A stretch of DNA of 64,000 nucleotides, taken from positions 186,001-250,000 of the forward strand of contig NIVC01001395.1 in the NCBI GenBank assembly GCA_002269645.1. The letters are read 5' to 3'. Below the pieces are notes generated by a model. The model ran no database searches and had not been told where the DNA came from. It was given only the letters and a program-made list of their open reading frames with translations. Below are positions 61-61,585 of this stretch, in pieces. Each line of letters begins with the position of its first letter. Within the stretch, counting starts at the first letter, position 1. The position numbers and the translations under genes are program-made. This stretch comes from Macrostomum lignano. Lineage: Eukaryota.

Positions 61-6278
<6,218 letters not shown>

Positions 6279-30709: not shown

Positions 30710-30970
30710 GATATTTAGTTTCAGCAAGAATAAAAGTTCTCTCTCTCAATTGCAAGTGCATGCGAAGAACTCAATTTTCAGCTCAGATTTCTTCGCTTTC
30801 GTAGCATACGGATGGGCCATAGAACAATGCTTTTAAACGAGCCTCATACTTTTTTCGCCATGAATTGGCTCGTTTCCGGTCCTGAGATATCAAGTTGTCC
30901 TTGCTGAGTGCGCAGAATGAACGTCAGATTGAAATGCTGAGATGCAGAACCAACCTCAGATGGTTTAAGA

Positions 30971-32043
30971 ATGGCTAGTGCATATGGCGATAAAGTTTCG
31001 CAGCGCCTGATCGTTTTTGCTTTTGCGGACGAAGGCATGTCCGTGAACACTATCCACCAGAGATTAGTCAGCCGTTTTGGAGATGATGCCTGCTGTCGAG
31101 CAACCGTCGCGAACTGGGTCCGGAAGAGAAAGGACGGCGAAATGAGCGTGCAGGACAAGCCACGCTCAGGCCGACCAGCTACTGCAGTCAACGACAGCAG
31201 TGCCATCCTGATCGAAGAGCTGGTAAGTGAAAACGGCCACATCACTATTGACGAGTTGGCCAATGCCGCCGGGATTTCGTGTGGCTCGGTCTTCCAAATT
31301 CTGCACGAGCATCTTGGTCTGTCAAAGCTGGTCTCTCGATGGGTGCCAAGACTGCTAACTGCCGAGCAGAAAAATCGCCGATACGAAGTCTGCTTGCAAC
31401 AAAGGGCGGCAATTTCAGCTCTGGGAGACGAGTTCAAAAGCAGATTTGTAACTCAAGATGAGTCCATGTTTGCCCTGTACGACCCACTCTCCCGGCGGGA
31501 GTCGAGGGCCTGGCTTCCGAGGGGCGGCGGCGGCGGTGACGTCGAAAGCGCAGGCACCTATCCCAAGAAGATCATGTTAAGTGTTTTTTGGGATGCGAGC
31601 GGGCCCCTTATGTTCACGTGGTACGGCCATGGCCAGACACAGAACAGCGAGCGGTTTTGTGACGAGCTCACGAGGCTGAGACAGGAGCTACTGCAACGGC
31701 GTCGGATCGTGCGCAAGGGCGTCCTGCTGCACTGCAACAATGCCCGGCCGCACTCGGCAGCCCTCACTCGCTCTCACATCGACAGCCTCAGATTCCAGCA
31801 GTGGCAGCATCCGCCCTACTCGCCTGATTTGGCACCGTCTGACTATGGTCTTTTTGGACACGTCAAGGCGCAGCTGAGAGGCAAGAGGTTCGCTAGCTTC
31901 CCCGAGCTGCAAACGGCTGTTGAGGGGCTCATCAGAGCGACTCCTAGAGACACGTGGTTATGATGGATCGAAGAGCTGCCGATGCGGTATGACAAGTGCA
32001 TTCAACGGAACGGTGATTACTTCGAAGATTTTCATGATTGGTG
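30971..32043 (+). pseudogene. Mariner transposase, probably inactive
   Basis: HTH region, WVPRLL, TQDE (D1), LHCNNARPH (D2 changed to N), HPPYSPDLAPSDY (D3, 34-residue spacing). In-frame TGA at 31961..31963 precedes the canonical tail ELPMRYDKCIQRNGDYFE. Confidence 0.9.
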
Positions 32044-34087
32044 ATCTGATTTTTGAAGTTTGGGAACTTGCCAACTTGAACCGTTTGCCCCTTTTGCTTG
32101 TACGTTTTGTTATGTGCTTAAAATCGTATTGCTAATTTCGTAGGTTCGTCAGTAAATGATCGATTGCTTTCGTTCTGTCTATACGACCAAGCTGAAACTC
32201 TAGCACTGAATTCATCAAAATATAGACCCATGTTTGTATAAATTATCATCAAAATCGGTCGAACAGATGCAGAGATATGAGGGGTGTCTAAGAACTTTTT
32301 GAATACACTAAGGTAATAATAAAATAATATTAACATGATCATGCTTTTAAGTTATGATAATAAAAAGAAATGCCTCTATTGATTAGATACCAATGTTGCT
32401 TTGCTTGCTTGTTTTTTATTTCATAATGAATAAAATAGCTCTAAATTCTTTGCAGAAATAAGTTAGAGATCTATACTTTTTATATATAAGTATATATTAA
32501 TGATATTCAGTTTCAAGGTTTTCAAACAAAGCATAGACTTATACTCAAAACCTTAATTAATATAATATAGTGTTAGGCACAAGACTTAATTGGTGAAAAC
32601 TGATACTCTGAAAACTGAAAAAAAAGTACTGTCAAATACCTGAAAGTCCCATATCCAAATTTGAGTATTGGCAATATTCTAATTCCAATACTTTTTTTTA
32701 AATGTTTAACTAATAGAAATGCATATATAATCTAAGCTTTTTAGACCTTGTCCAAGATTTTTAAGGCAAAGAAACTAAGCTTAGCATTGTTTTCAATGAA
32801 AGAGTTCTCAATAAAACAAATTAAATTAAATTAACAAATGAAAAACAATTAGTTGCCTTTGTAGACAATCAGTCAACTACTTACTAGCCATTGTAGTCAG
32901 TCTTCTTTGTCAGTAATTTAATTGTTTTAGTAGTATGGCAGCCTGCCAGTCTATTATTGGTGTACTTACATGCTTTCTCTCTACATGTAAACCTATAAAG
33001 TAAATTGCATTACTTCTCTTCCCTATACTCAACTTGGCCTTGATCAATATATGCACCCTATATAGTGGTTTCATTCATTTATTGCTGACTGCTTGCTTGT
33101 ATTTATATTTGCTTGTACATATTGTTCACTAAGTTGCTAATGTTACTAGAATAGTATCCATACTCATATATTTCCTATTGAAAAAATTATAGAATCAAAT
33201 TGGCAATTGAAGTGGCTGACAGTGACAATGTCAAAGAACTTGCAGCATGATAATGGCTCATTCCATATAAGATGGACATATTTGGAAAATAGAAAAAAGT
33301 CAATATTTTTGCTTGCCATTGCCTAATTAGCCTATTTTTTTACCAAATGTTTATATTGTGCAATATATACAATCTAAGAATAAAGGAATGGTAAAATGTT
33401 GGATTAGTATGTTATCAATTGGCAAAAAGTCATTTTTGTAAAAATTTGGACATTTTTCGAAGCAAAAGACATCATTAAGATTTTGTACCTTTTAAAAACA
33501 AATAGAAAGCTTTTGAAGGTTGAAACAAACTATAGATAAAAGTATAGTACTTGCATCATCAGATAAAAGCATTGGTGACCAAATAATCTATTATATTTTT
33601 AATGTATTAGTACCTCAAAGTTACTGAATTGACAGAAAAAAATATGTTACGACCATAAGGCTGCCTTTTCTTTTGTATCTTTGTTGCCTTTTGAGTTTAT
33701 ATATTCTAATAAAAGATTATGATTTCTAAAGATGTTCTACTTCTTAGTCAAATTTTAAAAATGTATTGCAAAATATCAAAAATGAAAAATGTTATAAGAC
33801 TTTTACCTTTTAGTTTCTATATGTCAAAAATCCTGTCGTTACGACCATAAGTGTCATTTAAGGTTTAATAGCATCTATACTAATGATGATATCCATATGA
33901 AACTCTATAAATATATTCTAGACAAAATAATCTTTCATTTAAAATATTGGTTTAGTATATTCTATTATTAGATTTCATTTTATAAGTAAAAATAACCTGT
34001 CATGTTACGACCATGCTTGTATGGAATGAGCCTAATTGACTAAATAGTATCATTTTTATGATACTTACTAATCACTATAAGTAACTA

Positions 34088-34393
34088 CATGCCCAATCTC
34101 AAAATTTCACCTGTCTAGTGTGGCTTAGTTTTGTTTGGTTTGCAACTTAGTTCCTCTCAATTGCAACTTAATTTTCACTTTTTATATGACTTTTTTTGCT
34201 TTTTTCTCTTATTTTCTCTTCTCTTTCCCCTTTCTTCTTTCTTTCTTCTCTTTCCTTTTCTTCTTTTCTCTTTTTCTCTTTTCTTTCTTCCTCTAATTTT
34301 TTTGTTTTTTTGCATTTTCAATTCTGCAACTTACCTTGGCTGGCGGCCATTTCACCCATCCTATTCAGATGGGTCAGATGGGTGTTGGGCATG
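34088..34393. mobile_element. Tc1/mariner-type MITE (TIR CATGCCCAA, TA flanks), copy 1
   Basis: TA|CATGCCCAA...TTGGGCATG|TA; body homologous to 37888..38746; internal TC-rich tract. Confidence 0.7.
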
Positions 34394-34726
34394 TATTAGT
34401 AACTAATTGATAAAATATACATGATGCAAGCTAGGCTATTTTAAAAAGTTTTAAAAACTTGTTTTAAGAAAGAAAATATTATTATTTCAGCTTTATTGAC
34501 CAAAAAGTGAAGTATTTATTATTACTTTCTATAAAAGTATACAACTATTTTATTCATTTAAAGAAATTTTGATTGTTTGCATGCTCAATATTTCAATAGA
34601 ATTAGACTATTGGAAAAAATTTTAAATTGTATTAGAAGTTACCAAAGTCTATTAGTACCAAAAAGTATTGGCTTCCAATACTCAGACACCCAAAAGGTAT
34701 CACTGATAGTATTGGAGTATTAGAAT

Positions 34727-35615
34727 TAGGGATGCCAATTCTGGTTAACCAGTTAATCAAAAAACTGGTTTTGGTCTGTTTTTTTCACTTTTTTATATTT
34801 TTATATTGTTATATAGCATGTCATAATCAATAAACCATTTCTACGCAAGATTTGTATATAAATTCAACCATAATTTATGAATTACTAATCAGGAATCACA
34901 ATTTGTAGATGAAATATGTATTATGAAAAGGAATAGGGCCTAATCTAATAATCATACTGATCAAATAAACAAAGCAATATGCAATAAATCTATTTTAATA
35001 GCCTATCAAATTATCAACTATATTAAGTATTGTCATTAATAAATATGATTTTGTTGTGTGCTTAGATCTTGATTGAATACTTGAATTGACTTTGAACTAT
35101 TAAGTCTGTGTTGTGTATACTACATATGTTATTGATAATTTGAAAATAAATTTTCGATTTTTTTAGCAAATACATTATTATAATGTTATTTATATAGCTT
35201 TTAAACAGTTAGTTTCTATTGATAATGAGATAATGAGATCAGTTGAGAAAGCAAAGCATGTGTATTAATGCACTGACACTGATTTACTTTTTTTGGTTAT
35301 TATTTCACTTTATTCATTTGCAAAGGAAAAAAATTGCCAACCTTAAGAAAATTTCTAGTTGAAAATGAATAATAATTTGAATGCATCCTTCATTTGATAA
35401 TAGATGAGTACATTAGAAAAACAAGATATGATTCAAAATCAATTTCAAGCATATTTTTAATTTTAGTGCGAGCATGCTAAATGACCTTTTTTGAGTGGTC
35501 TTGTAGCAAAAATTGGTAAGCTAATTTTGAAATCACTCAAATCAGTTTTGGCCAAAAAACAGATTTTAAAACCAGCTAAATGGTTCCACAAAATTGACAG
35601 TTTTTGGCATCCCTA
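34727..35615. mobile_element. Possible old hAT-like non-autonomous element
   Basis: 12-bp inverted termini TAGGGATGCCAA / TTGGCATCCCTA; no clean TSD. Confidence 0.4.
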
Positions 35616-37138
35616 GACCTAATCAGAATTGTGCCTAAGACTGATAATATTAATATATGTCTCAGTCTATCTTGGCCGTTGGCCTAAGCCCAACTTAGCA
35701 ACTATACTGACTGTATGTAGCCTAAAGGTCTACTTAGGCTTTTATCCAAAATGGTTGTCCCTGAAACAGTCTGTCGCCAAAATTGAGCAGATGAAAAGTA
35801 CTTTGTAACTTTATAAATATAAGTAAGTAGACTAACAATAACATAAAAAGAACAAATTAAAGCCAAAATGAAGCTAAGGGTTGTTGTAATGATTTGAATA
35901 TAGGCTAGGCCTACCGTCTTAAAATAGTTTTTAGGCAACAACATTCTTGTCATTTTAGAGCAGTTTTAAAAAGGGTGTGCCATTTTTATTATACAACACG
36001 GCCAACGCTGAACGGAACGCATAATACTTGCATAAAAGAACCTTCGCCATGCCTATAAATTATAAATATGAGTCAACACGACAACAGTGAAGACGCAAAT
36101 TTTTTTTCGTAAAATAAATAAAAAATATCATTAGAATGCAGGTATTGTTTTTTGTAGCCAAGATTTGTCAGTTGGCCTCGCTTCGTGTTCGTGATGAATT
36201 GTTTTGAATTATTGTTCACAAAAATCATACAATGTTCAGACGTTCAGCGATAAGATGTCTAAGAAAATATAAACTTAAATTTAGTGTCTTGTTTTAGTAG
36301 AATAACAAATAGTAACTATTTAAATATAATTAACTGACTGACCGCAACCAAAAAACTTTTCAGTACAAATAATATTTAAAAATTATTGATAAAATTAACG
36401 CATGGTACTTTAAGTTCATTAGATTTTAAGTTTTTTTGCAGGAAAAAATAACTCTAAATTTTCTAGTGACGAAATCTGATGTAATATTGTTGTAGAGAAA
36501 TCTATGATTGAATAAGCGAACTCTAGCGGCGCACCGTAAGCCCGTAGCCTCTAATAACCTAATAAGCTACTTTGGCGTTAAGTAGGTCTAACTAATTCTA
36601 TGTAAGATAAGGCATTGCCATTGTGTTAGTTTCTTAATCTTAGTTTAAAAAGTTTAAAAAAATTACAATGTCCCAATGCCAATTTTCAATGTTTTACTTA
36701 ATCTAATTTTTTTGTAATAAGTAAAAATATTTTAGGTCCGAAATCCTATAGGCCTAATTTCATTTATTTTTTAGTTCTAGGCTTATTTAAAGGGTTTTAC
36801 TATAGAAGTTGCTTAAGTTATGCAGGTAGGGACTTAAGTCTCTCTCATTGAGTGAGTGAGGGTCTTGCCTTGTGACTTGACAATGTCATGAATGATGAAT
36901 TTAATTTTAAAGAACAAATTAAGACAAAAAAGTTGCCTAGTTTTTTTGCAAAGCAGATTGCAGAATATACACATTTAGGCCTAGGGCTTAAGTTGTTATA
37001 GGCCTAAGTCTTTTTTGTAGAATTTCTTAAATAAAGATAGGCCTAAGTAAAAATCATTTTAAGAAGGTTCCTAGGCCTACTAAGACTCAAACTTTTTATT
37101 TAGAGTTCTAAGTTCTGTAACTTATACAATGTAGCTAG

Positions 37139-37643
37139 CCATACTCAGGATCATGTAGTATACGCCCGAAAATTTGGGTGTGCATTGGCCTTGCATACCA
37201 AAATTAGGCGTGCACAGTTGGCGTACATCACTCCTGAGAAAAAAGTATGCGTGCACACCTGGTGTTCACTTTATAGAATAATGCGTAAGAGTTATTGTAA
37301 AGTAGAAAAAAGATGAAAAAAGTTCATTTTTAGGCGCAAATTTCAAGCTTTCTGGTTTTTTCCAGCTCGTAAGAGAGTATTTAAACAAATCTTTGTGTGT
37401 ATAAACTTTCCGCTGTAAATAGTATCGCCCAAAAAGCCTTAAAAGCAACAAAAATTATTTAATAATAAGGGTCTATTACAAAATTTAAAAAAAGGTCTTT
37501 TATTGTCCCAATGTAAAAAAGGTCATTTATTGTTGCAACACCAACGTATTTTTGAGAATGGGTGCACACTAATTTTTTTCGGCGTGCATTTATAATTATT
37601 CAATTTTTGTTCAGGCGTGCACCCAGCATGATCTGGACTATGG
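37139..37643. mobile_element. MITE with CCATAST..GATCATG TIRs and 8-bp TSD (hAT/P-type)
   Basis: CCATACTCAGGATCATG...CATGATCTGGACTATGG; flanks GTAGCTAG / GTAGCTAA (7/8). Confidence 0.7.
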
Positions 37644-37887
37644 GTAGCTAAGTGGTTATAGCCATAGTCCTGATCATGCTAGGTATATACCCAAACAAAA
37701 ATAAAGAATGCATACCAAAAAATTGAGTGCATGCCATTCCCAATACTATATGCAACAAATGACCTTTTTATATTTTTTAAATATATGAACTTCTTTGAAT
37801 TGCATAAAAGAACCTTTTTGGTAGATAATTTAGTAGATTTTTATGCTTTTTAGCAATATTATTTATAGTGAAAAATCATAGCTCCTA

Positions 37888-38746
37888 CATGCCCAATCTC
37901 AAAATTTCACCTGTCTGATGCAACTTAGTTTTGTCAAGATTTGCGACTTAGTTTCTCCCAATTGCGACTTAATCTTCACTTTGTATATATTACTTTTCTT
38001 GCCTTTTTCTTTTCTTTTCTTTTTTTTCTCTCTTCTCTTTCTTTTCTCTCTCTTCTTCCTCCTTTCTTTTCCTTCTCTTCCTCTCCTTTTTTCTCCCAAT
38101 TTTTTGTGTTTCACATTTTTGATTTTGCAACTTACCTTGGCCAGTGCCATACTCAGAAAGGTTACTACATGTAAGCTGGAATTTTCCGGCGTACCATTAA
38201 AAAGTTTGGCTATTTTGGCATACCACTTTGAGCTCACAAAAATTTGTGGCATACCAATTTTGGTGAATAAATTCATGCTGTGTATAAAAATTGAATTAAA
38301 AATTGAAAAAAATAATAATTTAAATTAACCCTTTTTAGTTTTTATGTAAAATGAAGGAAAATTTGTATAGTCTAGAAAGTCAGTGATAAACTTTTTGCTT
38401 TTTTAAAATTAACAATGAATAAAACTTGTGTAAATTATTGCTAAGAATGTAAATTTTGCATTCATTTTTCTGAAGGTTTAATTTAAGTTTGTTTAAAATG
38501 AAAATATTTGTAATATTTGAAAGAATTTTTGTATGAAAGCCTTTCTTAGAAAACTCTACTCGTGAAAACCAAATGACCTTTTTTAGGAGGAATTTTTGCT
38601 GTACATTTTAGGGATTTTTTTGTTTTTGGTGTACACTGGCATACATTTAGCTGAGATAGGATTCTTGTTCCAGCGTACACTACTACACGATCCAAACCAT
38701 GGGGCCAGTGGCCATTTCACCTATCCAGTTTGGACGTTTGGGCATG
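37888..38746. mobile_element. CATGCCCAA MITE copy 2, containing a nested 556-bp CCAT-type insertion (38147..38702)
   Basis: TA-flanked TIRs. Nested insert begins CCATACTCAG, ends CCATGG and is flanked by perfect GGCCAGTG duplicates (38139..38146, 38703..38710). Copy 1 lacks the insert. Confidence 0.72.
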
Positions 38747-41423
38747 TATATGGAAAATTGATACTTTGCAAAGATTTATTTAAATGCCTTAATATAAGCT
38801 TGAAAAACCTGAAAACCAGGAAAGCTTTAAATTTATACTTAAAAATAAACTTTTTTATCTTTTTTCTACTTTGTCTTAACACTAACTTTTCTATGCAATT
38901 CTATAAAGTATATGCCAAGTGTGCATGCACATTATTTTCTTAGGCCTAGGAGTAATACACACCAACTGTGTATGCCTAGGCCTACTTTTGGCATGCAAGG
39001 CCAATGTACGTCCAAATTTTTGGGGTCCATAAGAATTGCCCACCAAGATTTGCCCATGGGAGATTTGCCTGTCAGGATTTGCCTGCCAAGTTTTTCCTGC
39101 CAAGATTTGCCTGCAATGCATTTTGCCCATGAGCATTTGACAGCTAGATTTTGTCTACAATGCACCCCCCAAAAATATGCATTTCATATGTAGTTACTAT
39201 CAAAATATTTGATTGGGTAAATCTCTTTATTTAGACTTACTAAGCATTGGAGAGGCAATGCAGACAAAATCTGCCATGTGGCTATTTAAATGTGCTACAG
39301 GAAAAAATCATTGCAGGCAAATCTTGGCAGGACAAGCTTAGCAGGCAAATCCCAATAGGCAAATCTCATATGGGCAATTTTTCTGTGGGCATCTCTTGTG
39401 CTCTTGAATTTTTGTGCATATAAAGTCTATAAATGTGCATTAAGCATTATACACTTTGTGTACCAAATATGGTATCAAGGAAGCAAATTGATATATAACA
39501 AGAGTAACTATGACTAAGTTGCCTTGTTAGCTAGGCCCAAATAATAAGTAGTCCTAGGTAATTTATTAAGCTAGGTAATTTGTTAAGTTTTATTAACTAA
39601 ACTATAAAAAACTTGCTTAAGCTACCTACCTTATTATCTTATAAGTTTTATTAATTTAGCTAATAAGCAATTTACTATTTTTCATTTAGTTGAAATTTGT
39701 AGAAAATGTAGAACTTTGTGTGCCTCTTTATCTTGACCTGTAGCTCTTATTAAAATATTTTCAAGCTAAAACTATGACTAATTAGTAGTTTTTTAATATT
39801 ATATAAAATTATAATAAAAGCCTTAAAAAATCTGGCTTAGCCAGAGGAAAGCACTAGTGAGCTATCCTTCACTATATTATCACTTCTCCATGCTATCTTT
39901 TAAATATGTGCTATCCTTCGGCTTCTAGTGTGCTAGCCTTTTTGGCATGCTGCTTCTCAGCCCTTCTGACATGCCACCCCTTCGCCTTTCTGATGCATCA
40001 GTGTGCCAACACTTTTCAAAGCATGCTAGATAGCTATCTATGAAAATTTCACTTTTTCTAATAGGGACTTCTATTTTTATATGCATCCTATTTTTTGCCC
40101 TGGTTCTTTACCATTGCTATGTGCTATGCTACCATCCTTTGCATTGCATGATTGCTACATACAATGCCAACTGCTGCACAAATGTGCCATTTTCAAGGTC
40201 ATTGCCTTACCTTATTTCCAATCTGCATTAAACACTATAATAATGTCTATTGGCTATAATAGGAGACAAAATTACCAAATTAATAAACAAAATGACTTTT
40301 TATTAATATTAGTAAAACAAAAAAGGCAATAAAAATATAGTAAACAACAAAATCATTATCAACCAACCTTGATCCTAGGCATATAGTTGATTAGTTGCAT
40401 TGGATCATAGGAATATATTTTCAATGTTAGTTTATTTAGTTTTTTTCTGGTATTCTTTGAATGGTAGATATAGAGCTAATATGCACTTTGAATTTGACAA
40501 TTTCTTATTTGAGGAATTTTAAACGTGTCCAAGTATATCTAAGTATGTGCATGCCAATTTATTTTATTGTCTATCTAGCATGTGTATGCAATCCCCTTTT
40601 TTTCTAATAAAACCATAAAAAGCCTTGCAAAGATGCTAAAGAATTGTGAAGAATTGCAAAGATACTAAAGCTCATAGCCATGGTTATTCATTCTAGGGAA
40701 TTTCTAAAAATTTTAGGCATATAAGTTTAGGCATTTGATAACAAGGGGACTTGGTGCAATCTTAAAGCTATTAGGGAAATTAGTAAAATGCAATGGCTCT
40801 TGGAAAGAATTACAAGGATGTCAAGGCTTATTGGGTAATTTCTAAAATGCTTTGGCTTTTAAAAGAACCTGCTAATATGTCAATGCTTATTGTGGAATTG
40901 AGGCTCATTAGGGAGTTGCTAAAATGCTAAAGCTCAAGGCTAACACTGTAATAGCAAAATGTATCATTAAGATGCTACAACCTACTCATAGTGCTATATA
41001 AAATTAGGGTTAGGATTCAACAATATAAAAAATTTCTTTGTTAACTATAAAGTGCTCATGGGATAATTACTGAGATGCCAATCAATGATTTACATAATAA
41101 TTTTTTGAAATTTCAAGGCTTATTGGGGAAATTGCACAATATTAGGGCTTACAGGAAGATAGATATCAAAGCGCATAGAAGAGTTATTAAGATGTCAAGG
41201 CTCTTAGGTGTTGCTAAATTGCTAAATTACTTATTGAATCTGTCTCTATTAGAAAGTTTTCCAATATTGCTTTTATAATAGTTCTAGGTTAGGCTAGAAT
41301 TTTTTTATATAATTCAGTTTCTAGATATAGCCTGATAAAAATAATGATAAAGTTATTCATAAATTTTGTTATAATGTATCCCTTTTAATGTTTTATGTGT
41401 CTATCATTAAATCAGAAATCAAG

Positions 41424-44400
41424 ATGGACATTGATGATCCACCAGTAATCTATGGCCTAGAGACCCAGGCCAGAGCCCTGTGCTCAGTGCCAGCCTTAGA
41501 TGACAGCCAGCAGTTTATTATTGGCACGCAAGGCCTTCGAGTTGAGCACAATCAGCTGCATTTATTGACATTTGATGCCGACACCAATAGTGTTAGCAAA
41601 AGAATATTTGATCATGGCCGAGATGAGATCTGGTCTGTGTCTGTGGCGCCGCAAAACCCCAATCTGTGTGCTACTGTTTTTAACAGGTTAGTAGGGTTTT
41701 GTTTAAACTTGGTGCTGTTTCAATCTATTTAGCACTATTTGTATCTATTTAACGCTATTTCCAACCATTTGGTCCCATTAGAGTCTATTTAGCGCCATTA
41801 GAATCTATTTGGCGCCATTCGAATCCGTTTGGTGCCATTTGAATCCATTTGGCATCATTAGAGTCTATTTGGGGCCATTCGAATCCATTTAGCGTCATTT
41901 AGATGTATTTGGCGCCATTATATTTCATTTGGCGCCATTTTCGGATCCATTTGGCGCCATTAGAATCCATTTGGCGTCATTTAGATGTATTTGGCGCCAT
42001 TATATTTCATTTGGCGCCATTTTCGGATCTATTTGACGCCATTAGAATCCATTTGGCGTCATTTAGATTTTTTTGGAGCCATTCGAATCCATTTGGCGTC
42101 ATTAGATCTATTTGGCGCCATTAGAATCCATTTAGCGTCATTTAGATTTTTTTAGCGCCATTCGAATCCATTTGGCGTCATTTAGATCTATTTGGCGCCA
42201 TTCGAATCCATATGGCGTCATTTAGATCTATTTGACGCCATTAGAATCCATTTGGCGTCATTTAGATCTATTTGGCGCCATTAAAATTCATTTGGCATCA
42301 TTTAGATGTATTTGGCGCCATTATATTTCATTTGGCGCCATTAGAATGCACTTGGCGTCATTTAGATCTATTTGGCGCCATTAGAATTCATTTGGCGTCA
42401 TTTAGATTTATTTGGCGCCATTATATTTCATTTGGCGCCATTAGAATCCATTTGGCGTCATTTAGATTTCTTTAGCGCCATTCGAATCCATTTGGCGTCA
42501 TTTAGATCTATTTGGCGCCATTCGAATCCATATGGCGTCATTTAGATCTATTTGACGCCATTAGAATCCATTTGGCGTCATTTAGATGTATTTGGCGCCA
42601 TTATATTTCATTTGGCGCCATTTTCGGATCTATATGACGCCATTAGAATCCATTTGGTGTCATTTAGATTTTATTGGCGCCATTCGAATCCATTTGGCGC
42701 CATTTAGATCTATTTGACGCCATTAGAATCCATTTGGCGTCATTTAGATGTATTTGGCGCCATTATATTTCATTTGGCGTCATTTAGATCTATTTGGCGC
42801 CATTAGAGTTAATTTGGAGTCATTTAGACCTATTTGGCGCCATTCGAATCCATTTGGCGTCATTTAGATCTATTTGGCGCCATTAGAATCCATTTGGCGT
42901 CATTAGAGTCTATTTGGCGCCATTCGAATCAATTTGGCGCCATTCGAATCCATTTGGCGCCATTTGAACTCAATTAAGTTAATAAATATGACGCAATTGA
43001 GATTTTCCTAGCGCCATTTAGACAATTTAGATCTAATTGGCATCATTGCGTAGACTTATCAGGCGTCATTAAGTTTAATTTTAGGCTCACAGAAAGGTGA
43101 CTAATAATAAATTATTCAAATTTACCACTTCATTAATTTAGGGTAACCATGGACTCGGGCACGAATCCAAGCGTTGCTAAGCGCTGGTGCCTATGGAAAC
43201 TGCCAGAAGAAGAAGACAACCAGACGCCTCGGCATCGAAATAGCTCAGAGGACGCTCTAACCTCGTCTTCATTGTCCTCAGTTGAATCTCTGCAATCGAT
43301 TGGTTCTATTGAACTCGAGCAGCAGGGTGAGCCGCGCTGTTTAGCGTTTCATCCGGAAAGAACGGAAGCCTTGCTGGTATCTGACGGCGGGCTGTATCAG
43401 CTGGGCCTCGGCAGCGGTGAGGTCCGTCTGTTGGCTCACCTGCCAGCTAAAGACGGTCGATCTCAAGTGCGCTACTGGCATGCGGCTTGGAACCCTCATC
43501 ATTCTGCTCAGCAGGTGATCGCCGCCTGCGATTCTGGCGGATTAAGAGGCTTCGATGTTCGCTGCCCGCCTAGCAACGGCCCGGTTGTTGTCATTGACAA
43601 CGCGCATAATGGACAGGTAAACAGATTGGCATTAGAAATGGCCTTTAAACCTACCCAAGAACCATCCTTGAAACTCACGATAAGTCTCCGAAACCTCTCC
43701 GAAACCTACCCTAAATCATCCCCTAGAAACCTACCCTAAGTCACCCTAGAAACCTACCCTAAATCATCCCCTAGAAACCTACCCTAAATCACCCCTAGAA
43801 ACCTACCCTAAATCACCCCCTAGAAACTTACCTTAAATAGCCACTAGGAACCTACCCTAAATCACCCTAGAAACCTACCCTAAATCACCCTTAGAAACCT
43901 ACCCTAAATCACATTTTAGAAACCTACCCTAAATCACCCCCTAGAAACCTACCCTAAATCACCCCTAGAAACCTACCCTAAATCACCCCCTAGAAACCTA
44001 CCCTAAATCACCCCCTAGAAACCTACCCTAAATCACCCCCTAGAAACCTACCCTAAATCACCCCTAGAAACCTACCCTAAATCACCCCCTAGAAACCTAC
44101 CCTAAATCACCCTAGAAACCTCCTTTAAATCACCCTAGAAACCTACCCTAAATCATATTTTAGAAACCTACCCTAAATCACCCCTAGAAACCTACACTAA
44201 ATCACCCCCTTGAAACCTACCTTAAATCGCCCCCTAGAAACCTACCTTAAATCACCCCCTAGAAACCTACCCTAAATCACCCCCTAGAAACCTACCTTAA
44301 ATCACCCCCTAGAAACCTACCTTAAATCACCCCTAGAAACCTACCCTAAATCACCCCCTAGAAACCTACCTTAAATCGCCCCCTAGAAACCTACCTTAAA

Positions 44401-46457: not shown

Positions 46458-47672
46458 ATGTCTTCATCGTCTGACACTTCGCTGGCATCAGCCATGCGCG
46501 GTCGGTACACGCTGAAGATTGGCGACACGTTCGGTTCAACACCGGCCGCCAGGAATCGAGCAAGTTTCTCTACGTTTCGCTACGACTTCATGCCAGCCAG
46601 TGTGGACCAGTCTAAGCCGGGTCTGGTTGAGGTCGGCTCTACAGACGATGTCACGGTTTCGCTTGCTCACGGCTCCGCTAGCAGTCTGTCGCACACGATT
46701 TTCAAAGGTCACAAGCGTCCGTGTCACAAGGATGCCGTGTTAATTCTTGACCCGATCACTCGCGAGGCTCGTATTGAGCGAGTGAATTTGAACGTACAAT
46801 TAAAGAAGGCTAGGATTGAAGTGTGCCAATTAGATTTGGTTGAAAAGAAGCTGGGCATGAAAGCGGCTGAAGCGGCATCGGCGGCTACAACTGGGCCGAA
46901 AAAGTCTTCTTCTTCTAGTGGCACTGTTTCTGGTTCGAATAGTCACAAGCAGCCGTCTGTGCAAGCTTCCCATAGAAAGATATCGTCTAGTGAGATTGGT
47001 AAAAGCAAGCCCGAGAAAGCTGCCTCACAGCAGCAACAGCAGCAGCCACAGAAGAAAAAGAAAAAGAAACACGAGCACGGGACAGACACGGAAGCCGAAG
47101 CTGAGGCTAAACGCGAACGTGAACGCGAAAAAGAACGAGAGAAAGAGAGGGAAAGAGAACGGGAGAGAGAGCGAGAGCAGGAGAGAGAAAAGAAGAAAGC
47201 TCAAAAGAAGAAGGAACTGGAGCAGCAGCAGAAAAAGCAGCCACAACCGCCGGTTGCTAAAAAGTCGAAATCTGAAAAAGTTGTGGCCGCCGCCACTCTT
47301 TCTGATGCTTCATCGGTGTCTTCAGTTTCATCTTCTTCGTTATCCTCATCAGACGATGACGATTCAGATGCTAAGAAGCCTACTCAAGCCCCGCAGAAGC
47401 CGAAATTAAAGAAACAACAACAAAAGTCTTCTCAACCGGCTAAGCCGGCAGTTTTAAATTCTAACGATGATGACGATTCTGTCTCGTCTGATTCTTCCGC
47501 CTCTTCCGATGAACAATTCGTCGAAGTCGTCAGTCAGCCTCCACCGCAGCCTGCAACAACAGCTGCTGCTGTTACTGTTACCACCGCAACATCTGCCGCT
47601 CCAACGAAAGTGCTCAGCGATTTGGAATTGTTGCAGAATGATCTACAGCTTAGCGATAGCGATAGCGATTGA
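46458..47672 (+). CDS. EAF: ELL-associated factor (EAF1/EAF2 family), 404 aa, intronless
   Basis: FSTFRYDFMPASVD, IFKGHKRPCHKDAVLILD, ERVNLNVQLKKAR; C-terminal LQNDLQLSDSDSD; low-complexity central region. Confidence 0.92.
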   Translation: MSSSSDTSLASAMRGRYTLKIGDTFGSTPAARNRASFSTFRYDFMPASVDQSKPGLVEVGSTDDVTVSLAHGSASSLSHTIFKGHKRPCHKDAVLILDPITREARIERVNLNVQLKKARIEVCQLDLVEKKLGMKAAEAASAATTGPKKSSSSSGTVSGSNSHKQPSVQASHRKISSSEIGKSKPEKAASQQQQQQPQKKKKKKHEHGTDTEAEAEAKREREREKEREKEREREREREREQEREKKKAQKKKELEQQQKKQPQPPVAKKSKSEKVVAAATLSDASSVSSVSSSSLSSSDDDDSDAKKPTQAPQKPKLKKQQQKSSQPAKPAVLNSNDDDDSVSSDSSASSDEQFVEVVSQPPPQPATTAAAVTVTTATSAAPTKVLSDLELLQNDLQLSDSDSD

Positions 47673-53405: not shown

Positions 53406-55433
53406 ATGGCAAACTACGGATTCGCAAAGCCGTCTGCGCGACCCACAGCGGGCACCAGCGGCTACCGGCTTCAGGACGAGGATGCGGCCGCGCTCTCTGG
53501 CGGCGGCTTTCGCTGGGAGTCGCAGTTCGAGCGCTCCTGGGAGGCCCTGGCTGAGGATGAGGAGGGTCGCCTGGCTGGGGCTGTTGGGCGTCTGGAGCAG
53601 GTGGGTGAATTGTTATTGGGCTCATTGGACTTATTTAGTTAGCTAGTCAGTCAGTCAGTCAGCCAGCCAGCCAGTCAGTCAGTCAGTCAGTCAGTCAGTC
53701 AGTCAGTCAGTCAGTCAGCCAGTCAGTCAGTCAGCATCAAACCCCAAACGCCGCAGGCCCGCAAGCGCCGGCACCGTCTCGCAGCGGCAGCCCTGCTACC
53801 CGGCGGCGGTGGCCGGGCCAGCAAGCTGGGCATGATGCGGCATCTGCTGCTGTGCCTGGACTGCTCAGAGACCATGGGCTTGGCCGATCTCAAACCCTGC
53901 CGTTTAGCCGCCTGCCTATCCGCAATGCGCAACTTCGTGTCCGGATTCTTCGATCAGAATCCCATCGGACAGCTGGGCGTGCTGCTGACCAGACGGAAGC
54001 TGGCGGAGAGAGTGACCGAGCTCACTGGCAATCCCAGGCGACATTTGGACGCGCTAAAAGATTTGGCTCAAGCCGGCTCGGGCAAAACCGCCCGTCCCGA
54101 AGGGGAGGCGTCATTTCAGAATCTGCTGGAGATGGCCTACGACACGCTGGGCCCCCTGCCAGGCCACGCCTGCAAAGAGGTGCTCGTGCTGGTGTCAGCC
54201 TTGAGCACCTGCGATCCGGGAGATATCGGTGCGACCATTAGCAAACTGGCCAAGGCTAGGATCAGGTGTTCGGTGAGTGAATCATTTCTGTCTGCCTTTT
54301 TTTCTTTTATTGTTACTGTTTTTCAAGTCCTCTAGATCTGTACCCTTCCTACCCTCCTTTCCCTCTACCCGCTTTCCTCTAATTACCCTCCTTCCCCTCT
54401 ACCCGCTTTCCCCTCTATACCCTCTTTCCCCTCTCTATCCGCTTTCCCCTCTCTACCCACCTTCCCCTCTGCCCGCTTTCCCCTGTCTACCCACCTTCCC
54501 CTCTCTACCCGCCTTCCCCTGTCTACCCACCTTCCCCTCTCTACCCGCTTTCCGCTCTACCTGATTTCCGCTCTCTCTCGCGTCCCCGCTTCCCTTTCTC
54601 TCATTTTACCCTCTCCCCCTTAGATCTCTCCCCTCTATCCTCACTCTCGTCTATCCTTTCTCTACCCTCTTTACCCTCTTTCTACTTTCTCCCAACGCTT
54701 TCCTTCCTAGCCTCTCTCCATCTCTCTGTCTCTTTTCCGCCATGATGCGTCAAGGGCAAAGTACAAGCTCTAGGGAGTGGTTTTACCTTCTAAACCCTGC
54801 CAATTGGCGTCCCTTTCCCATAAATTGCCCAATTAACAGGTAATATCTCTGTCAGCGGATATTCGCGTATTGCGCAAACTCGCCCAGGCCACTGGCGGCA
54901 CCTACTCTGTGCCGCTAGACGCTGTCCATCTGTCCGACATCATGTCCAGCTTCCTGCCGCCACCGGCCAGCGCTCCCGATCCCGCTCTGATCAAAATGGG
55001 CTTCCCTTACTCGGCTGGGCAGGATGGCCAGGAGCAGCCGGGATCCCAGCAGGATGTCATCCGCATTTGCGCCTGTCACGGCACCGTACTATCCGCCGGG
55101 GCCACCGCTCACGCCTGCCCCCAGTGCGCCTGTCTTTACTGCGAGCTGCCGGTTGATTGTCGGATTTGCGGATTAAGCTTGGCCAGCGCCGCTCACCTGG
55201 CCAGATCCTATCAGCACCTGTTCCCGTTGAAGGCATTCGCCGAGGTCACCTTGGCGGCCAGTACGGGCTGTTGCGGATGTGGCGACAGACTAGGCGCTAG
55301 CACGGAAGCCTACCAGTGCAGCGACTGTCGGTCTCATTATTGTATCGATTGCGATCGGCTGTTGCACGACTCTTTGCACTCTTGCCCAGTTTGTTTGCAG
55401 ACTTTGTCGGTTAAAACTACTATCGCTACTTAG
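53406..55433 (+). CDS. GTF2H2: TFIIH subunit p44 (Ssl1), ~434 aa, 3 exons
   Basis: join(53406..53600,53757..54272,54840..55433) = 1305 nt. Motifs FRWESQFERSWE, LGMMRHL...DLKP.R, FFDQNPIGQLG, LSTCDPGDI, LIKMGFP, CPQC..LYCELPVDCRICGLSL..A.HLARSYQHLFPL, C-terminal C4C4 (YCIDCD...HDSLHSCPVC). Confidence 0.96.
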
Positions 55434-55974
55434 TAGTATATAAAAGAATAATATTTGTGCGCTAACAAAACTTTTGTACCTGAGCCAGTAAGTAACTTGC
55501 TTGATAAAGATTCAGAACACCGGGAGTAAAGTAGATAAGTAGTCTTTATCTTTATTCAACACATTGGTTCACAGTGAGAGGTCCAGTGGTACATGCATAA
55601 GTCATACGTCAAGCATTTAAAACTATGTTTGCTCTAATAATACACAATACAATAACTGCCTAATCGATGCAAAAGTATTTCATACGTTGTGACAGGTGTT
55701 TTTTTACTTTATTAACTCTCTTCTGTGCCTTACATTTGTTTATTTTCATAAGTAGCATTCATAGGAATACTTTAGTTAAACTAATTTAGGCTTTCTATAT
55801 TGTCTAATACAATTAGGTCTACCGCTGTAGTCTCAGTTATTCTGTTAAAACGCTTAATATTTAGTATATAGGACTAGCAGCTTAGCCCCCATCGGGGGTA
55901 ACTTACGCTGACAACATTAGAACTGAAATTTGTCATTTTTGTCATCTAAAATCATTAAGATCAACCGCTACGGC

Positions 55975-56192
55975 GGTTGCAGCCTAGTGGTTATTAGAGC
56001 GTCGGATTCACGACTAAAAGGTCCCGGGGTTCGATTCTCGACCCACTCACAACAATTTGTGTCCTTGTGCAAGACACATTAACTCTGCATTGCTGCAGTT
56101 CACCCAGCTGTAGAATGGGTGCCCCCCAGTCCTTGGAGTGGAGCAATAACTACGGCTGAGCTGTCGGTTGTACATCTGGCTATTGGGTCAGG
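55975..56192 (+). mobile_element. tRNA-derived SINE, copy 3
   Basis: Head GGTTGCAGCCTAGTGG...GGTTCGATTC; body GTGTCCTTGTGCAAGACACATTAAC...CACCCAGCTGTAGAATGGGT; tail matches copies 1 and 2. Confidence 0.82.
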
Positions 56193-56264
56193 TGTAATTA
56201 ATTATCATGTGTTTCTAATATATTTTAACTCCATCTATTTGCATGTGTCAACTCTACAACCGCA

Positions 56265-57164
56265 ATGGCAGCCACTTTAGACATTCGTTTGAAGCGTATT
56301 AACAAAACGTACACCGATGGTGACACAATCTCCGGCTATGCCGTGATTCGATGCAAACAAGACTGCGGTCACAATGGTCTCACATTGAATCTGACTGGCA
56401 CAGTTAGCATGCAGCTTAGCTCAAAAAATGTCGGAGTATTCGAAGCATTCTATAACAGTATCAAGCCGATTCAATTGACCGGAGCCACACTAGAACTAGC
56501 TAAGCCCGGCAAATTCACCACCGGATTAACAGAAATCCCATTTGAAATACCGTTCAAATCCAAGGGTAACAAAACACTGTATGAGACATACCACGGAGTG
56601 TTCATTAACATTCAGTACGTGCTTCAGTTGGACTTGAAACGCTCTCTATTGAACAAAGATCTCAGCAAAACTTGCGAGTTCTTAGTCGAATACAATCCAA
56701 AGAATGCTGGCCAACCGAGCTCGCAGACGCCAATAACTTTCGCTATCAGCCCGGACAGTGTAGTCAATGTTCAGAACAAGGCCAGTCTACCGAAGTTTCG
56801 CGTCACCGGCCAACTCACATCGAGTCACATTAGTATTTCTGAGCCACTGAGTGGCGAGCTAGTCATTGAGCAGTGCGCTACTCGGATTAAAAGTGTAGAA
56901 CTGCAGCTGGTACGCGTAGAGACCTGCGGCTGTCTGGAAGGCTACGCTAAAGAGACTACTGAGATACAGAATATCCAAGTGGCTGATGGAGACGCTCCCA
57001 GAGGGATTAAAATCCCTCTGCACATGGTGCTGCCGCGTCTGTTCACCTGTCCGAGCGTTTCGGCTACCAATTTCCGAATCGAATTCGAAGTCAACATTGT
57101 TGTTGTGTTTCAAGACGACTATCTGGTGTCTGAAAATATCCCTATTCGCGTTAGCAGATTCTGA
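56265..57164 (+). CDS. VPS26C: Retriever subunit VPS26C (DSCR3), 299 aa, intronless
   Basis: LDIRLKRINKTY, LSSKNVGVFEAFYNSIKPIQL, LYETYHGVFINIQY, IKSVELQLVRVETCGC.EGYAKETTEIQNIQVADGD, LPRLFTCP. Confidence 0.97.
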   Translation: MAATLDIRLKRINKTYTDGDTISGYAVIRCKQDCGHNGLTLNLTGTVSMQLSSKNVGVFEAFYNSIKPIQLTGATLELAKPGKFTTGLTEIPFEIPFKSKGNKTLYETYHGVFINIQYVLQLDLKRSLLNKDLSKTCEFLVEYNPKNAGQPSSQTPITFAISPDSVVNVQNKASLPKFRVTGQLTSSHISISEPLSGELVIEQCATRIKSVELQLVRVETCGCLEGYAKETTEIQNIQVADGDAPRGIKIPLHMVLPRLFTCPSVSATNFRIEFEVNIVVVFQDDYLVSENIPIRVSRF

Positions 57165-57294: not shown

Positions 57295-57765
57295 TAACAA
57301 ACAGACACTTAGACAGGCAGACAGAAAGGCGGACAGACAGACAGTTAGACAGACAAACATTCTGACAGACAGGCAGGCAGGAAGACAGACAGACAGGCAG
57401 ACTGAAAGGCGGGCAGACAGACTATCAGACTGACAAACATACTGACAGGCAGATAGACAGACAGGCAGACAGGCAGCCGGCAGACAGAAAGGCGGGCAGA
57501 CAGACAGAAAGGCAGACAGAAAGGCAGACAGACAGACAGGCAGACAGACAGGCAGGCAGGCAGACAGGCAGACAGACAGGCAGGCGGACAGATAGGCAGG
57601 CAGACAGATAGGCAGGCAGACAGACAGGCAGGCAGACAGACAGGCAGACAGACACAGACAGGCTGACAGAAAGGCAGGTAGACAGGCAGACAGACCGACA
57701 GATAGACGGACTGACTGACTGACTGACACTCAGATAGACGGATACACAGACAGACAGACAGACTG
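57295..57765. repeat. Degenerate (GACA/GGCA)n microsatellite
   Basis: Seen directly. Confidence 0.9.
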
Positions 57766-58494: not shown

Positions 58495-58750
58495 GCAGAC
58501 AGACAGGCTGACAGACAGACAGACAGACAGACATACACTAGGACAGGCAGACAGACAGACAGACAGACCGACATACACTAGGACAGGCAGACAGACAGAG
58601 ACTAAGACAGACAGGCACTAAGACAGACAGGCAGACAGACAGGCACTAAGACAGACAGACAGACAGACAGGCACTAAGACTGACAGACAGACAGACAGGC
58701 ACTAAGACTGACAGACAGACAGACAGGCACTAAGACTGACAGACAGTCAG
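58495..58750. repeat. Degenerate GACA-based repeat with GGCACTAA interruptions
   Basis: Seen directly. Confidence 0.88.
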
Positions 58751-58803
58751 AAAGCGTGAACAATTAAATCACATACTACTAATATACATCCATAATTCCT
58801 CCC

Positions 58804-59084
58804 ATGCCGTCAGCAGAGATGAATCGCCAGTAGCCCCAGCTACACCGCTGCGCCCCGTAAGGCCAGACAGTCAAGAAACGCAACGAAAACCCAACACAGA
58901 CGCCAACATGGCTACCTTTACCTGCCAGTCAACTCAGTGCTCAAAGTACAATAAGACTACTGCTACTAATACTACTACTACTACCAAGCATAATCACTTC
59001 TGCAAGCATGACTGCCAACATGACTTCAATGGTGACTCCGCCAATGGCGGATGCCAGTGGTGGAGATTTCTCTTCATATCTTAG
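58804..59084 (+). promoter_or_regulatory. Putative translational-control leader: short uORF1 (58804..58833) plus overlapping out-of-frame uORF2 (58908..59084)
   Basis: uORF1 MPSAEMNRQ* has an internal ATG at 58819 (MNRQ*). uORF2 starts in strong context (caacATGG), encodes 58 aa, and overlaps the main ORF by 77 nt out of frame. Transcript 5' end is unknown. Confidence 0.7.
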
Positions 59085-60175
59085 TCTCTGTCAGGATGCT
59101 CGTCACGCTGAGCAAGACGTTGAGCTGCTCCTGTCATCCGCATCAGTTTGGCTAACTGATTCGCTGTTGCCAAAGTCCGGCCCAGCCTCCCATCGTACGG
59201 ACGATGATGATGATGAAGTGTCATCGGTGCTGCTTGACGGCTTCCCTAGCAACAGTGCCGTTGCTAATGACGCTGAGATGGATAGTATTTTCCCATTTCA
59301 CGACTGTCTTCTCGACTTGGACGGTGTCGACTTTGATGTCGATGAGTTGATGCCGCCGGATCGACCGGTTTTCGACGATGGTGATGATGACGACGCAGAT
59401 GAAGATTCGGTGATGTCATCGTCATTGACGTCGTCTGTCGATGAGACGCCACCGCCTCGGATGCTGCCTCGCAGAGGCAGAGGCAGAGGCGGCGGTGTCG
59501 GCAGGAAGTCGAAATCTTCTAATATGAGGACTAAAGGCGAGGCTAATCGAGAGGCTGCCTATCGGTTAGTTGCTAACTGATGCCCACTCTGTGTATTGCT
59601 GACTCCCCCTCTCGGACCCCCTCTCTGACCTCTCGGGCCTCCCCCTCCCTGATCGCTCCCTCCCGGACCTCCCCCTCTCTGACGCCCCCCTCTCTCTAAT
59701 CGGCTCTCTGACCTCCCCCTCTGACCTCCCCATCTCTGATCACCCCTTCTCCGACCTCCCCCTCACTGACGTTCCCCTCTCTGACTCCCCCTCTTTAGCC
59801 TCCCCCTGATCTCTTCCTCTGTGAACTCCCCTCTCTGTTCTATTCTTTCTCAAATCCACATGCCCTAACGGTCGCACACACAACGCCAAGCCTCGCCCCC
59901 CCCCCGCCCTCAGATACAGAGCAAAGCAGCGCCAATCCAACTCGCTGGCCAAGTCCCAACACTCGCAACTGGTTGCCGACAATCAACGTCTGGAAGCTGA
60001 AGTGGCATCGGCCGAGAGCCAGCTGCAGTTCCTGCTCCACTTGTGCCGCAGGAGGCCAGCGCCATCTAAGAGGCGACTGCAGCTAAGAGTTTTAGAGGCC
60101 GATGAAGACTGCGATCCACCGCAGCTGGGTTCGAAACCCAAAGTTATCACCATGGTTTTTAAACACCGGGCTTGA
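59008..60175 (+). CDS. ATF4: bZIP transcription factor, ATF4/ATF5-like, ~272 aa, 2 exons
   Basis: join(59008..59564,59914..60175), CG|GTTAGT...CTCAG|A. The spliced basic region KGEANREAAYRYRAKQR (N-x7-R) and zipper ...LVADNQRLEAEVASAESQLQFLLHL resemble ATF4 (NKTAATRYRQKKR...IQYLKDL). Acidic N-terminus. Orthology not tested. Confidence 0.72.
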
Positions 60176-60489: not shown

Positions 60490-60920
60490 GCACAAATCTA
60501 CATGAGAACCGCTCATTTGTCTACCCTGAGAATCGCCCCAATCTACCCTGAGAATTGCCCCAATCTACCCTGAGAAACGCCCCAATCTACCCTGAGAATT
60601 GCCCCAATCTACCCTGAGAATCGCCCCAATCTACCATGAGAATCGCCCCAATCTACCCTGAGAAACGCCCCAATCTACCATGAGAATCGCCCCAATCTAC
60701 CCTGAGAATCATTCCAATCTACCCAGAGAATCGCTCATTTGTCTACCTGAGAATCGCCCCTAATCTACCCTGAGAATCGCCCCAATCTACCCTGAGAAAC
60801 GCCCCAATCTACCCTGAGAATCGCCCCAATCTACCCTGAGAATCGCCCCAATCTACCCTGAGAAACGCCCCAATCTACCATGAGAATCGCCCCAATCTAC
60901 CCTGAGAAACGCCCCATTTG
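60490..60920. repeat. 22-bp minisatellite (ATCTACCCTGAGAATCGCCCCA)n
   Basis: Period 22 seen directly. Confidence 0.94.
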
Positions 60921-61264: not shown

Positions 61265-61585
61265 GTGTCAAATGAGGTGTCAAACGGGTGCCAAATGGGG
61301 TGTCAACCGGGTGTCAAACGGGGTGCCAAATGGAGTGCCAAATGAAGTGTCAAATGGAGTGCCAAATGGAGTGCCAAATGGAGTGCCAAATGAAGTGTCA
61401 AATGGAGTGTCAAACGGAGTGTCAAATGAAGTGTCAAATGGAGTGTCAAATGGAGTGCCAAATGGAGTGCCAAATGGGGTGCCAAATGGAGTGCCAAATG
61501 AAGTGCCAAATGGAGTGTCAAATGGAGTGCCAAATGGAGTGCAAAATGGAGTGCCAAATGGGGTGTTAAATGGAGTGTCAAACAG
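61265..61585. repeat. 12-bp minisatellite (CCAAATGGAGTG)n
   Basis: Seen directly; explains the NGVP/CQME spurious ORFs. Confidence 0.94.

Follow-up and report, generated by a model that had tools for sequence, protein, structure and literature searches.

An ATF4-like bZIP gene of Macrostomum lignano with two upstream open reading frames arranged as in ATF4 leaders

The bZIP gene and its leader

We analysed a stretch of 64,000 nucleotides (nt) of the Macrostomum lignano genome (contig NIVC01001395.1, positions 186,001 to 250,000 of the forward strand; hereafter the window), in which positions 58,804 to 60,175 hold a gene for a basic leucine zipper (bZIP) protein preceded by a pair of upstream open reading frames (uORFs, Table 1). 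The open reading frames (ORFs) of the leader, their start contexts and their distances were recomputed from the read sequence of the region. A short uORF1 is followed by an ATG-free spacer and then by uORF2, which lies in another frame than the main ORF, stops 77 nt inside it and contains all four of its early in-frame ATGs (59008, 59020, 59029 and 59044). The window gene thus has the layout of ATF4-type leaders, that is, a short 5'-proximal uORF and then a strong-context, overlapping, out-of-frame uORF. A sequence-only reading of this DNA had proposed a uORF1 of nine codons, or of four from an internal ATG, a 74-nt spacer, a strong-context uORF2 of 58 amino acids and a 77-nt overlap covering the four ATGs, and every one of these values came out again with its coordinates. 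Only the choice between the two forms of uORF1 needs qualifying: both exist in the genome, but the upstream ATG at 58804 is CTG in one close copy of the gene (L001, see below).

The protein is encoded by two exons, and the intron between them splits the basic region as NREAAYR/YRAKQR. The donor reads ctatcg/GTTAGT at 59565 and the acceptor ...CCCTCAG/ATACAG, with 59914 as the first base of exon 2. The spliced product has 272 amino acids and the unspliced ORF 190; only the spliced product reaches the Pfam bZIP_2 cut-off (24.5 bits vs 22.3), which bears out the earlier proposal that the domain appears through splicing alone. The 272-residue protein scores 12.3 bits to bZIP_1, related proteins (described below) score 21-23.5 bits to bZIP_2, and the invariant residues of the domain are N180-R192, L205, L212 and L226. 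Within M. lignano, protein searches matched P0001 (BOX15_Mlig009232g2, 88% by BLASTP), P0002 (99% over the length of P0002) and P0006 (Mlig009092g1). P0001, an annotated protein reading AAYRYRAKQR, confirms the acceptor at 59914. A second acceptor follows 6 nt further on, so that two stand in tandem at 59908-59921 (CTCAG/ATACAG/): P0001 uses 59914 and P0002 uses 59920, and P0002 consequently lacks two basic-region residues, Tyr-Arg. P0002 is thus likely to be mis-predicted, or to represent a minor isoform that would be defective in DNA binding. The intron itself is largely a CT-rich 15/30-nt tandem repeat (59599-59807).

Table 1. Features of the bZIP locus and its upstream flank (window positions; a slash marks a splice boundary)
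Feature	Positions	Strand	Remarks
Vps26 gene, intronless	56265..57164	+	upstream neighbour, preceded by Ssl1/TFIIH p44 gene; Pfam
(CAGA)n / 40-nt minisatellite	58496..58751	.	directly 5' of leader; in all three close copies; Tandem Repeats Finder
TATA-like element TAATATAC	58780..58787	+	~30 nt 5' of uORF1; block 58770-58799 identical in three close copies
uORF1, 9-codon form, ATGCCGTCAGCAGAGATGAATCGCCAGTAG	58804-58833	+	in-frame ATG inside at 58819; stop TAG at 58831-58833
5'-most in-frame ATG of uORF1	58804..58806	+	ATG in window and L007, CTG in L001
Candidate spliced-leader acceptor(s) ...ttcctcccatgccgtcAG/cAG/AG	58807..58818	+	first exon base 58814, 58817 or 58819
uORF1, 4-codon form, ATG AAT CGC CAG TAG (MNRQ, stop)	58819..58833	+	proposed reinitiation-permissive short uORF
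Spacer, uORF1 stop to uORF2 start, 74 nt	58834..58907	+	ATG-free in any frame; proposed scanning/recharging interval
uORF2, 58 codons, context GCCAACATGG	58908..59084	+	A at -3, G at +4; proposed inhibitory uORF
Coding exon 1	59008..59564	+	acidic N-terminal region and first part of basic region; matches protein P0001
bZIP domain, residues ~176-230	59533..60046	+	exonic parts 59533-59564 and 59914-60046; Pfam bZIP_2, alignment to 1ci6_A
Intron, 349 nt (GTTAGT...CTCAG)	59565..59913	+	phase 2, codon 186, in basic region; alternative acceptor 6 nt downstream at 59920
Coding exon 2	59914..60175	+	rest of basic region, leucine zipper, C-terminal tail, TGA stop; ORF/splice reading, Pfam

Close copies, distant relatives and their mature mRNAs

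Two annotated paralogous loci (L001 and L007) and the window make three close copies of the gene. The leaders of L001 and L007 match that of the window with 94% mean column identity, and the 4-codon uORF1, a spacer of 74-75 nt, the 58-codon uORF2 and the 77-nt overlap are present in all three. The 4-codon uORF1 is identical throughout (3/3), the non-overlapping part of uORF2 differs by two substitutions only, and the uORF2 stop of L001 is changed from TAG to TAA and is thus kept. The most variable stretch of the leader among these copies is formed by the five bases 58800-58804, and since the ATG at 58804 is CTG in L001, the 4-codon uORF1 is the only form common to the three. This pattern suggests that ATG 58804 probably lies outside the mature mRNA and that the functional form of uORF1 is probably not the 9-codon one.

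More distant relatives were obtained by an exhaustive HMMER search with P0001, which returned P0003 and P0005, both encoded in assemblies made from public sequencing runs; a cluster look-up added P0007, a longer product of the P0005 gene. A profile search found a second M. lignano gene (Mlig020208g2, protein P0008) with an intronless coding sequence and genomic copies at L008 3745-4086 and L009 3754-4086 (NIVC01000138 and NIVC01003015). The window family shares 28-35% global identity with P0008, P0003 and P0007, and these three share 51% (P0008 vs P0003), 48% (P0008 vs P0007) and 42% (P0003 vs P0007) with one another. Because identities are 28-35% between the groups and 42-51% within the second, M. 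lignano holds two old ATF4-like gene families. By the same comparison, the second family has counterparts in two other species, P0003 (species spA) and P0005/P0007 (species spB). The basic-region intron is the sole coding intron of the window gene and the second family is uninterrupted at that point; the intron was either gained in one paralog family or lost in the other.

The two-uORF layout recurs in all of these genes. In spA, a 2-codon uORF1 (context GCCATGG) is followed by a 119-nt spacer and a 64-codon uORF2 (context GCCAAGATGG) that overlaps the main ORF by 86 nt. The corresponding values are 2 codons, 111 nt, 60 codons and 77 nt in spB, and 2 codons, 118 or 114 nt (L008 or L009), 69 codons and 86 nt in genomic Mlig020208. 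The second family and its counterparts have GCCATGG around the start of uORF1 and GCCAAGATGG around that of uORF2. Across all copies, the window gene included, uORF1 spans 2-4 codons, the spacer 74-119 nt, uORF2 58-69 codons and the overlap 77-86 nt. The frame of uORF2 relative to the main ORF is the same in every gene compared, and additional upstream AUGs between uORF1 and the main start lie solely in the uORF2 frame. The uORF2 peptides are alike in their first residues only (MATFTCQS, MASFTIYQS, MAFTMYYQS and MASPDTYQA): the window gene, the divergent paralog and spA open with MATFT, MASFT or MAFT, and spB with MASPD. At the nucleotide level the leaders, the window's included, align as homologous, with the region of the uORF2 start as the best-conserved block. 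Altogether, these alignments indicate that the layout is conserved across an old gene duplication and between species.

The uORF1-uORF2 spacer of Mlig020208 and of both foreign mRNAs also holds a hairpin, GCAC-YYCG-GTGC (L008 3786-3797, L003 ~66-77, L005 ~67-78), with a kept stem, a UCCG, CUCG or UUCG tetraloop and a predicted energy of -5 to -6.6 kcal/mol; the window gene has none.

The relatives further inform on mRNA 5' ends. In M. lignano, ~30% of genes are trans-spliced, the acceptor motif is loose, and the full 35-nt spliced leader, CGGTCTCTTACTGCGAAGACTCAATTTATTGCATG, ends in ATG (PMC8629364); spliced-leader sequences are highly conserved among Macrostomum species (PMC10468722). The RNA runs behind the relatives (SRR28338163-5 and SRR30276811-2) yielded contigs of ~1.1 kb, and 4 of the 5 contigs, from four runs and two species, have the final 16-24 nt of the M. 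lignano leader at their start. Since these leader nucleotides are identical and leaders are conserved within the genus, we take the contigs to be mature trans-spliced mRNAs of Macrostomum-like worms. After the leader they continue with CC ATG GAT TAA in spA and CC ATG GAG TAG in spB; the junction is 2 nt 5' of uORF1, and both uORFs are therefore part of the mature mRNA in these species. The last leader base provides the G at -3 of the optimal uORF1 context. The AUG of the leader itself, with T at -3 and C at +4, has a weak context; from it an extra uORF of 21 or 28 codons extends over the 2-codon uORF1, the AUG of which follows 5 nt downstream.

For the window gene, we scored every AG in the leader as a trans-splice acceptor by its pyrimidine tract. 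The best tracts that fit the junction position of the relatives give 58814 or 58817 as the first exon base. Splicing there would remove ATG 58804 and keep both uORFs, and the AUG of the added leader would open a uORF of 2-3 codons, ending in TGA and overlapping the start of uORF1. If the gene is not trans-spliced, TAATATAC may act as a core promoter, with transcription starting near 58810. By either route, the mature 5' end of the mRNA most likely falls just upstream of ATG 58819.

The genomic copies of Mlig020208 lack an AG at the position of the relatives' leader junction (ATTGATG/CC in L008 and ATTGCTG/CC in L009), and because no AG precedes CCATGG, the trans-splice site of this gene in M. 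lignano differs or is absent. We considered that the L008 gene might be a retrocopy, the genomic ATG before CCATGG being a remnant of the spliced leader. This idea was largely dropped: the Kozak context of uORF1 accounts for the shared GCC, the sister copy has CTG instead of the ATG, and a poly(A) remnant is absent after the L008 3' untranslated region (UTR).

To place the protein among bZIP families, a profile of the bZIP domain was built from both M. lignano gene families and both other species and searched against the PDB. Human ATF4 (chain 1ci6_A) was the top match with each of two profiles (E 1.7e-5 / 28.2 bits and 2.1e-5 / 27.9 bits), ahead of GCN4, NFIL3, ATF2 and C/EBP-alpha/beta at 14-19 bits, a lead of 9-10 bits in a ranking that covers the bZIP families with solved structures. 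The alignment to 1ci6_A runs gap-free over 55 residues and brings the zipper heptads into register (L, L, L, A, L vs L, L, L, L, L in ATF4). The basic-region signature N-x2-AA-x-RYR-x-K-x-R is present, NREAAYRYRAKQR aligning with NKTAATRYRQKKR of ATF4, and the Tyr of RYR is Ser in the aligned GCN4 (RRSR), NFIL3 (KRSR) and C/EBP-beta (RKSR). To our knowledge, most bZIPs carry Cys or Ser at this position and the Tyr is diagnostic across all bZIP families. The family profile and the RYR signature thus support an ATF4-like bZIP, and the family named in the sequence-only reading holds. A profile of the bZIP domain alone gave no matches in a search at database scale.

The surroundings of the gene are also shared among the close copies. 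Ssl1/TFIIH p44, Vps26 and the bZIP gene follow one another on one strand in the window, L001 and L007 alike; in the window, the C-terminal exon of the Ssl1/TFIIH p44 gene and then Vps26 occupy 54870-57164. Vps26 lies ~1.65 kb upstream of the bZIP leader, across a gap that is mostly microsatellite and other repeats, and in M. lignano, trans-spliced genes are assigned to operons on the criterion of a repeat-adjusted distance of 1 kb (PMC8629364). A polycistronic unit Ssl1/Vps26/bZIP is possible from this arrangement. Only ~50-65 nt of unique sequence separate the (CAGA)n minisatellite from uORF1, and in the L008 gene a 36-nt minisatellite stops ~75 nt 5' of the leader. Further tandem repeats flank the window gene: (AGAC)n at 57311-57763, a 22-nt unit x18 at 60520-60916, which starts just past the likely 3' UTR, and a 12-nt unit x27 at 61265-61582.

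Elsewhere in the window we found an ORF containing DUF7043 (3102-4472), a two-exon amiloride-sensitive sodium channel (ASC/DEG-ENaC) gene (20737-23239) and a gene for the RNA polymerase II elongation factor EAF (46458-47672). Transposon-derived ORFs at 28965-31963 comprise a minus-strand ORF for a TNP-like RNase H and one for a DDE transposase of the Tc1/mariner type (30971-31963), and they adjoin an AT-rich block of 10 kb (32000-42000) with a GC content of 0.29-0.34 vs ~0.45 elsewhere. An Rfam scan of the window returned no family.

A proposed switch and its alternatives

Taking leader, protein and relatives together, we consider it likely that the locus is one of three close ATF4-like bZIP copies whose leader forms an ATF4-type delayed-reinitiation switch. 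From the anatomy of the leader and its conservation we infer that the uORFs are translated and that the outcome depends on eIF2alpha phosphorylation. The mRNA would acquire its 5' end by leader addition at the CAG sites 58812-58816, or by transcription starting ~30 nt after the TATA-like element. Having translated the tiny uORF1, ribosomes would stay bound to the mRNA and take up scanning again. As long as eIF2 ternary complex is abundant, the 74-nt spacer would be long enough for their recharging, and they would initiate at the strong AUG of uORF2; terminating 77 nt beyond the main start, they would not make the bZIP protein. When eIF2alpha is phosphorylated, recharging would be slower, and some ribosomes would bypass the uORF2 AUG and start at 59008 or at one of the three in-frame AUGs that follow. 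If the mRNA is trans-spliced, the weak-context AUG of the leader would add its 2-3 codon uORF to this series, overlapping the start of uORF1.

Could such an arrangement of ATGs and stops be a chance pattern with no regulatory role? A leader of 190-220 nt is expected to contain 1.5-2 ATGs, and we measured how often these fall into the observed order with 20,000 dinucleotide-preserving shuffles of the leader, each joined to the real coding sequence. A shuffle was counted if it held exactly two uORFs: a first one of at most 10 codons whose end lay 40 nt or more ahead of the other, and a second one that ran across the main ATG out of frame and measured 40-80 codons (strict criterion) or any length (loose criterion). 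ATF4-like layouts arose in 0.33-0.44% of shuffles under the strict criterion; under the loose one they arose in 1.3-1.5%, and the upper figure (~1.5%) and the expected 1.5-2 ATGs are what a chance origin has in its favour. A chance origin of the geometry of the window gene is thus unlikely. Beyond these frequencies, four lineages with proteins that are 30-51% identical have the layout, its frame relation and the strong context of uORF2 in common, although their uORF2 peptides part ways after the first few codons; stray out-of-frame upstream AUGs are absent from the leaders of the gene and its relatives, and L001 keeps its uORF2 stop through the TAG to TAA change. With these observations added, we regard an arrangement devoid of regulatory role as extremely improbable.

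Several observations do weigh against a switch in the window gene itself, and they bear on two further explanations. The bZIP domain is very divergent, its preference for ATF4 emerging with the family profile only: single-sequence PDB matches are weak (C/EBP-beta E 0.089, ATF4 E 0.35) and fail to separate the two families. A counterpart of the window-type gene outside M. lignano was not found by the HMMER search with P0001 or by the profile search, and the window gene belongs to the more divergent of the two paralog families. The protein might then be a lineage-specific bZIP rather than a functional equivalent of ATF4, its uORFs serving as constitutive dampers or following another logic, as in C/EBP, CHOP or Drosophila Xrp1; other bZIP genes with regulatory uORFs do exist, Xrp1 being a reported example. 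Nevertheless, the profile search ranks ATF4 first by 9-10 bits, the RYR signature is common to ATF4 alone among the aligned families, and a short uORF, a spacer and a long overlapping out-of-frame uORF form the specific ATF4 arrangement rather than a single uORF. We therefore judge a bZIP outside the functional range of ATF4 to be unlikely.

The RNA evidence, for its part, comes from counterparts of the divergent paralog and not from the window gene, whose transcript was not recovered in exact-protein look-ups (uORF2, the 190-residue unspliced ORF and P0002). The uORFs might thus be present in the genome yet absent from the mature mRNA, with leader addition or transcription start falling downstream of uORF1 or of the uORF2 ATG. 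The proportion of trans-spliced M. lignano genes and their loose acceptor motif are compatible with this, as are CAG sites with 70% pyrimidines inside uORF2 at 58929 and 58938 and the same-strand Vps26 gene, given how largely repeats fill the intervening gap and how the operon criterion adjusts for them. Yet the related mRNAs carry their leader upstream of uORF1, and acceptors just as good (58814 and 58817) are found immediately 5' of uORF1 in the window gene. The start context and first codons of uORF2 are kept between families that are ~30% identical, which is hard to explain if they are spliced away, and a leader added at 58929 or 58938 would place its AUG in the uORF2 frame, again producing an overlapping inhibitory uORF. 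Loss of the uORFs from the mature mRNA is, on balance, quite improbable, and the delayed-reinitiation switch remains our preferred reading.

A bolder extension of this reading is that in macrostomids the spliced leader is itself built into the ATF4 switch: the choice and efficiency of the acceptor site would set the number and type of uORFs, and with them the stress threshold, the leader having been kept in two old paralog families. We offer this only tentatively and would at present sooner doubt it than assume it.

Comparison with known systems

In the literature searched, we found no report of ATF4 uORFs in flatworms, and the present locus extends the two-uORF layout to Platyhelminthes, where it survives an old gene duplication and coexists with an AUG-bearing spliced leader. 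The general picture is unchanged, uORF control of ATF4 being already described as conserved across phyla. Since M. lignano can be made transgenic (PMC5730564), the leader described here could report the integrated stress response in vivo in a flatworm that regenerates, and could also be used to probe the effect on reinitiation of an AUG supplied by a spliced leader. That AUGs of flatworm leaders can open ORFs in the mRNAs receiving them is known (PMC9851317, citing Cheng et al. 2006). Most published examples have this AUG as the initiator of the main protein, whereas in the related ATF4-like mRNAs it opens one more upstream ORF; a leader AUG acting as an extra uORF in a reinitiation cascade was not described in the literature searched.

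Yeast GCN4 resembles the proposed switch in that reinitiation is timed by eIF2 ternary-complex levels, and GCN4 was also the second or third best structural-database match of the flatworm bZIP profile. Its leader differs in having four short non-overlapping uORFs and no long overlapping last uORF.

Drosophila ATF4 (cryptocephal, crc) is an invertebrate precedent with a uORF1 and an out-of-frame overlapping uORF2; AUA mutants revealed opposing roles of the two uORFs and induction by endoplasmic reticulum stress (PMC4433282). Because these fly uORF mutants were tested, an ATF4 switch in an invertebrate is already established. The fly overlap is longer (125 nt vs 77-86 nt in flatworms) and the fly mRNA is not trans-spliced, whereas in the flatworm the layout occurs in each of two paralog families that diverged long ago.

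The mammalian genes offer the closest geometry. In mammalian ATF4, for which delayed reinitiation is established, the last uORF measures 180 nt and overlaps the main ORF by 83 nt (PMC5666893, PMC13587735). With its uORF2 of 58 codons and its overlap of 77 nt, the window gene justifies the near-identical geometry that had been claimed from the DNA. It shares with mammalian ATF4 and ATF5 a first uORF that is tiny and 5'-proximal, tens of nt of spacer free of ATG, and a last uORF of ~59 codons whose start context is good and which overlaps the main start out of frame. The resemblance does not extend to the rest of the gene: the flatworm protein is only ~30% identical to mammalian ATF4 in the bZIP domain and cannot be aligned outside it, reading its sequence revealed no DSG-type degron motif, the window gene has an intron inside the basic region, and the related flatworm mRNAs carry a trans-spliced leader whose AUG opens a uORF of 21-28 codons. 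For human ATF4, current descriptions list three uORFs that measure 6 nt, 12 nt and 180 nt (PMC5666893, PMC13587735), and the flatworm series of a leader-AUG uORF, a tiny uORF1 and a long uORF2 is similar to that arrangement.

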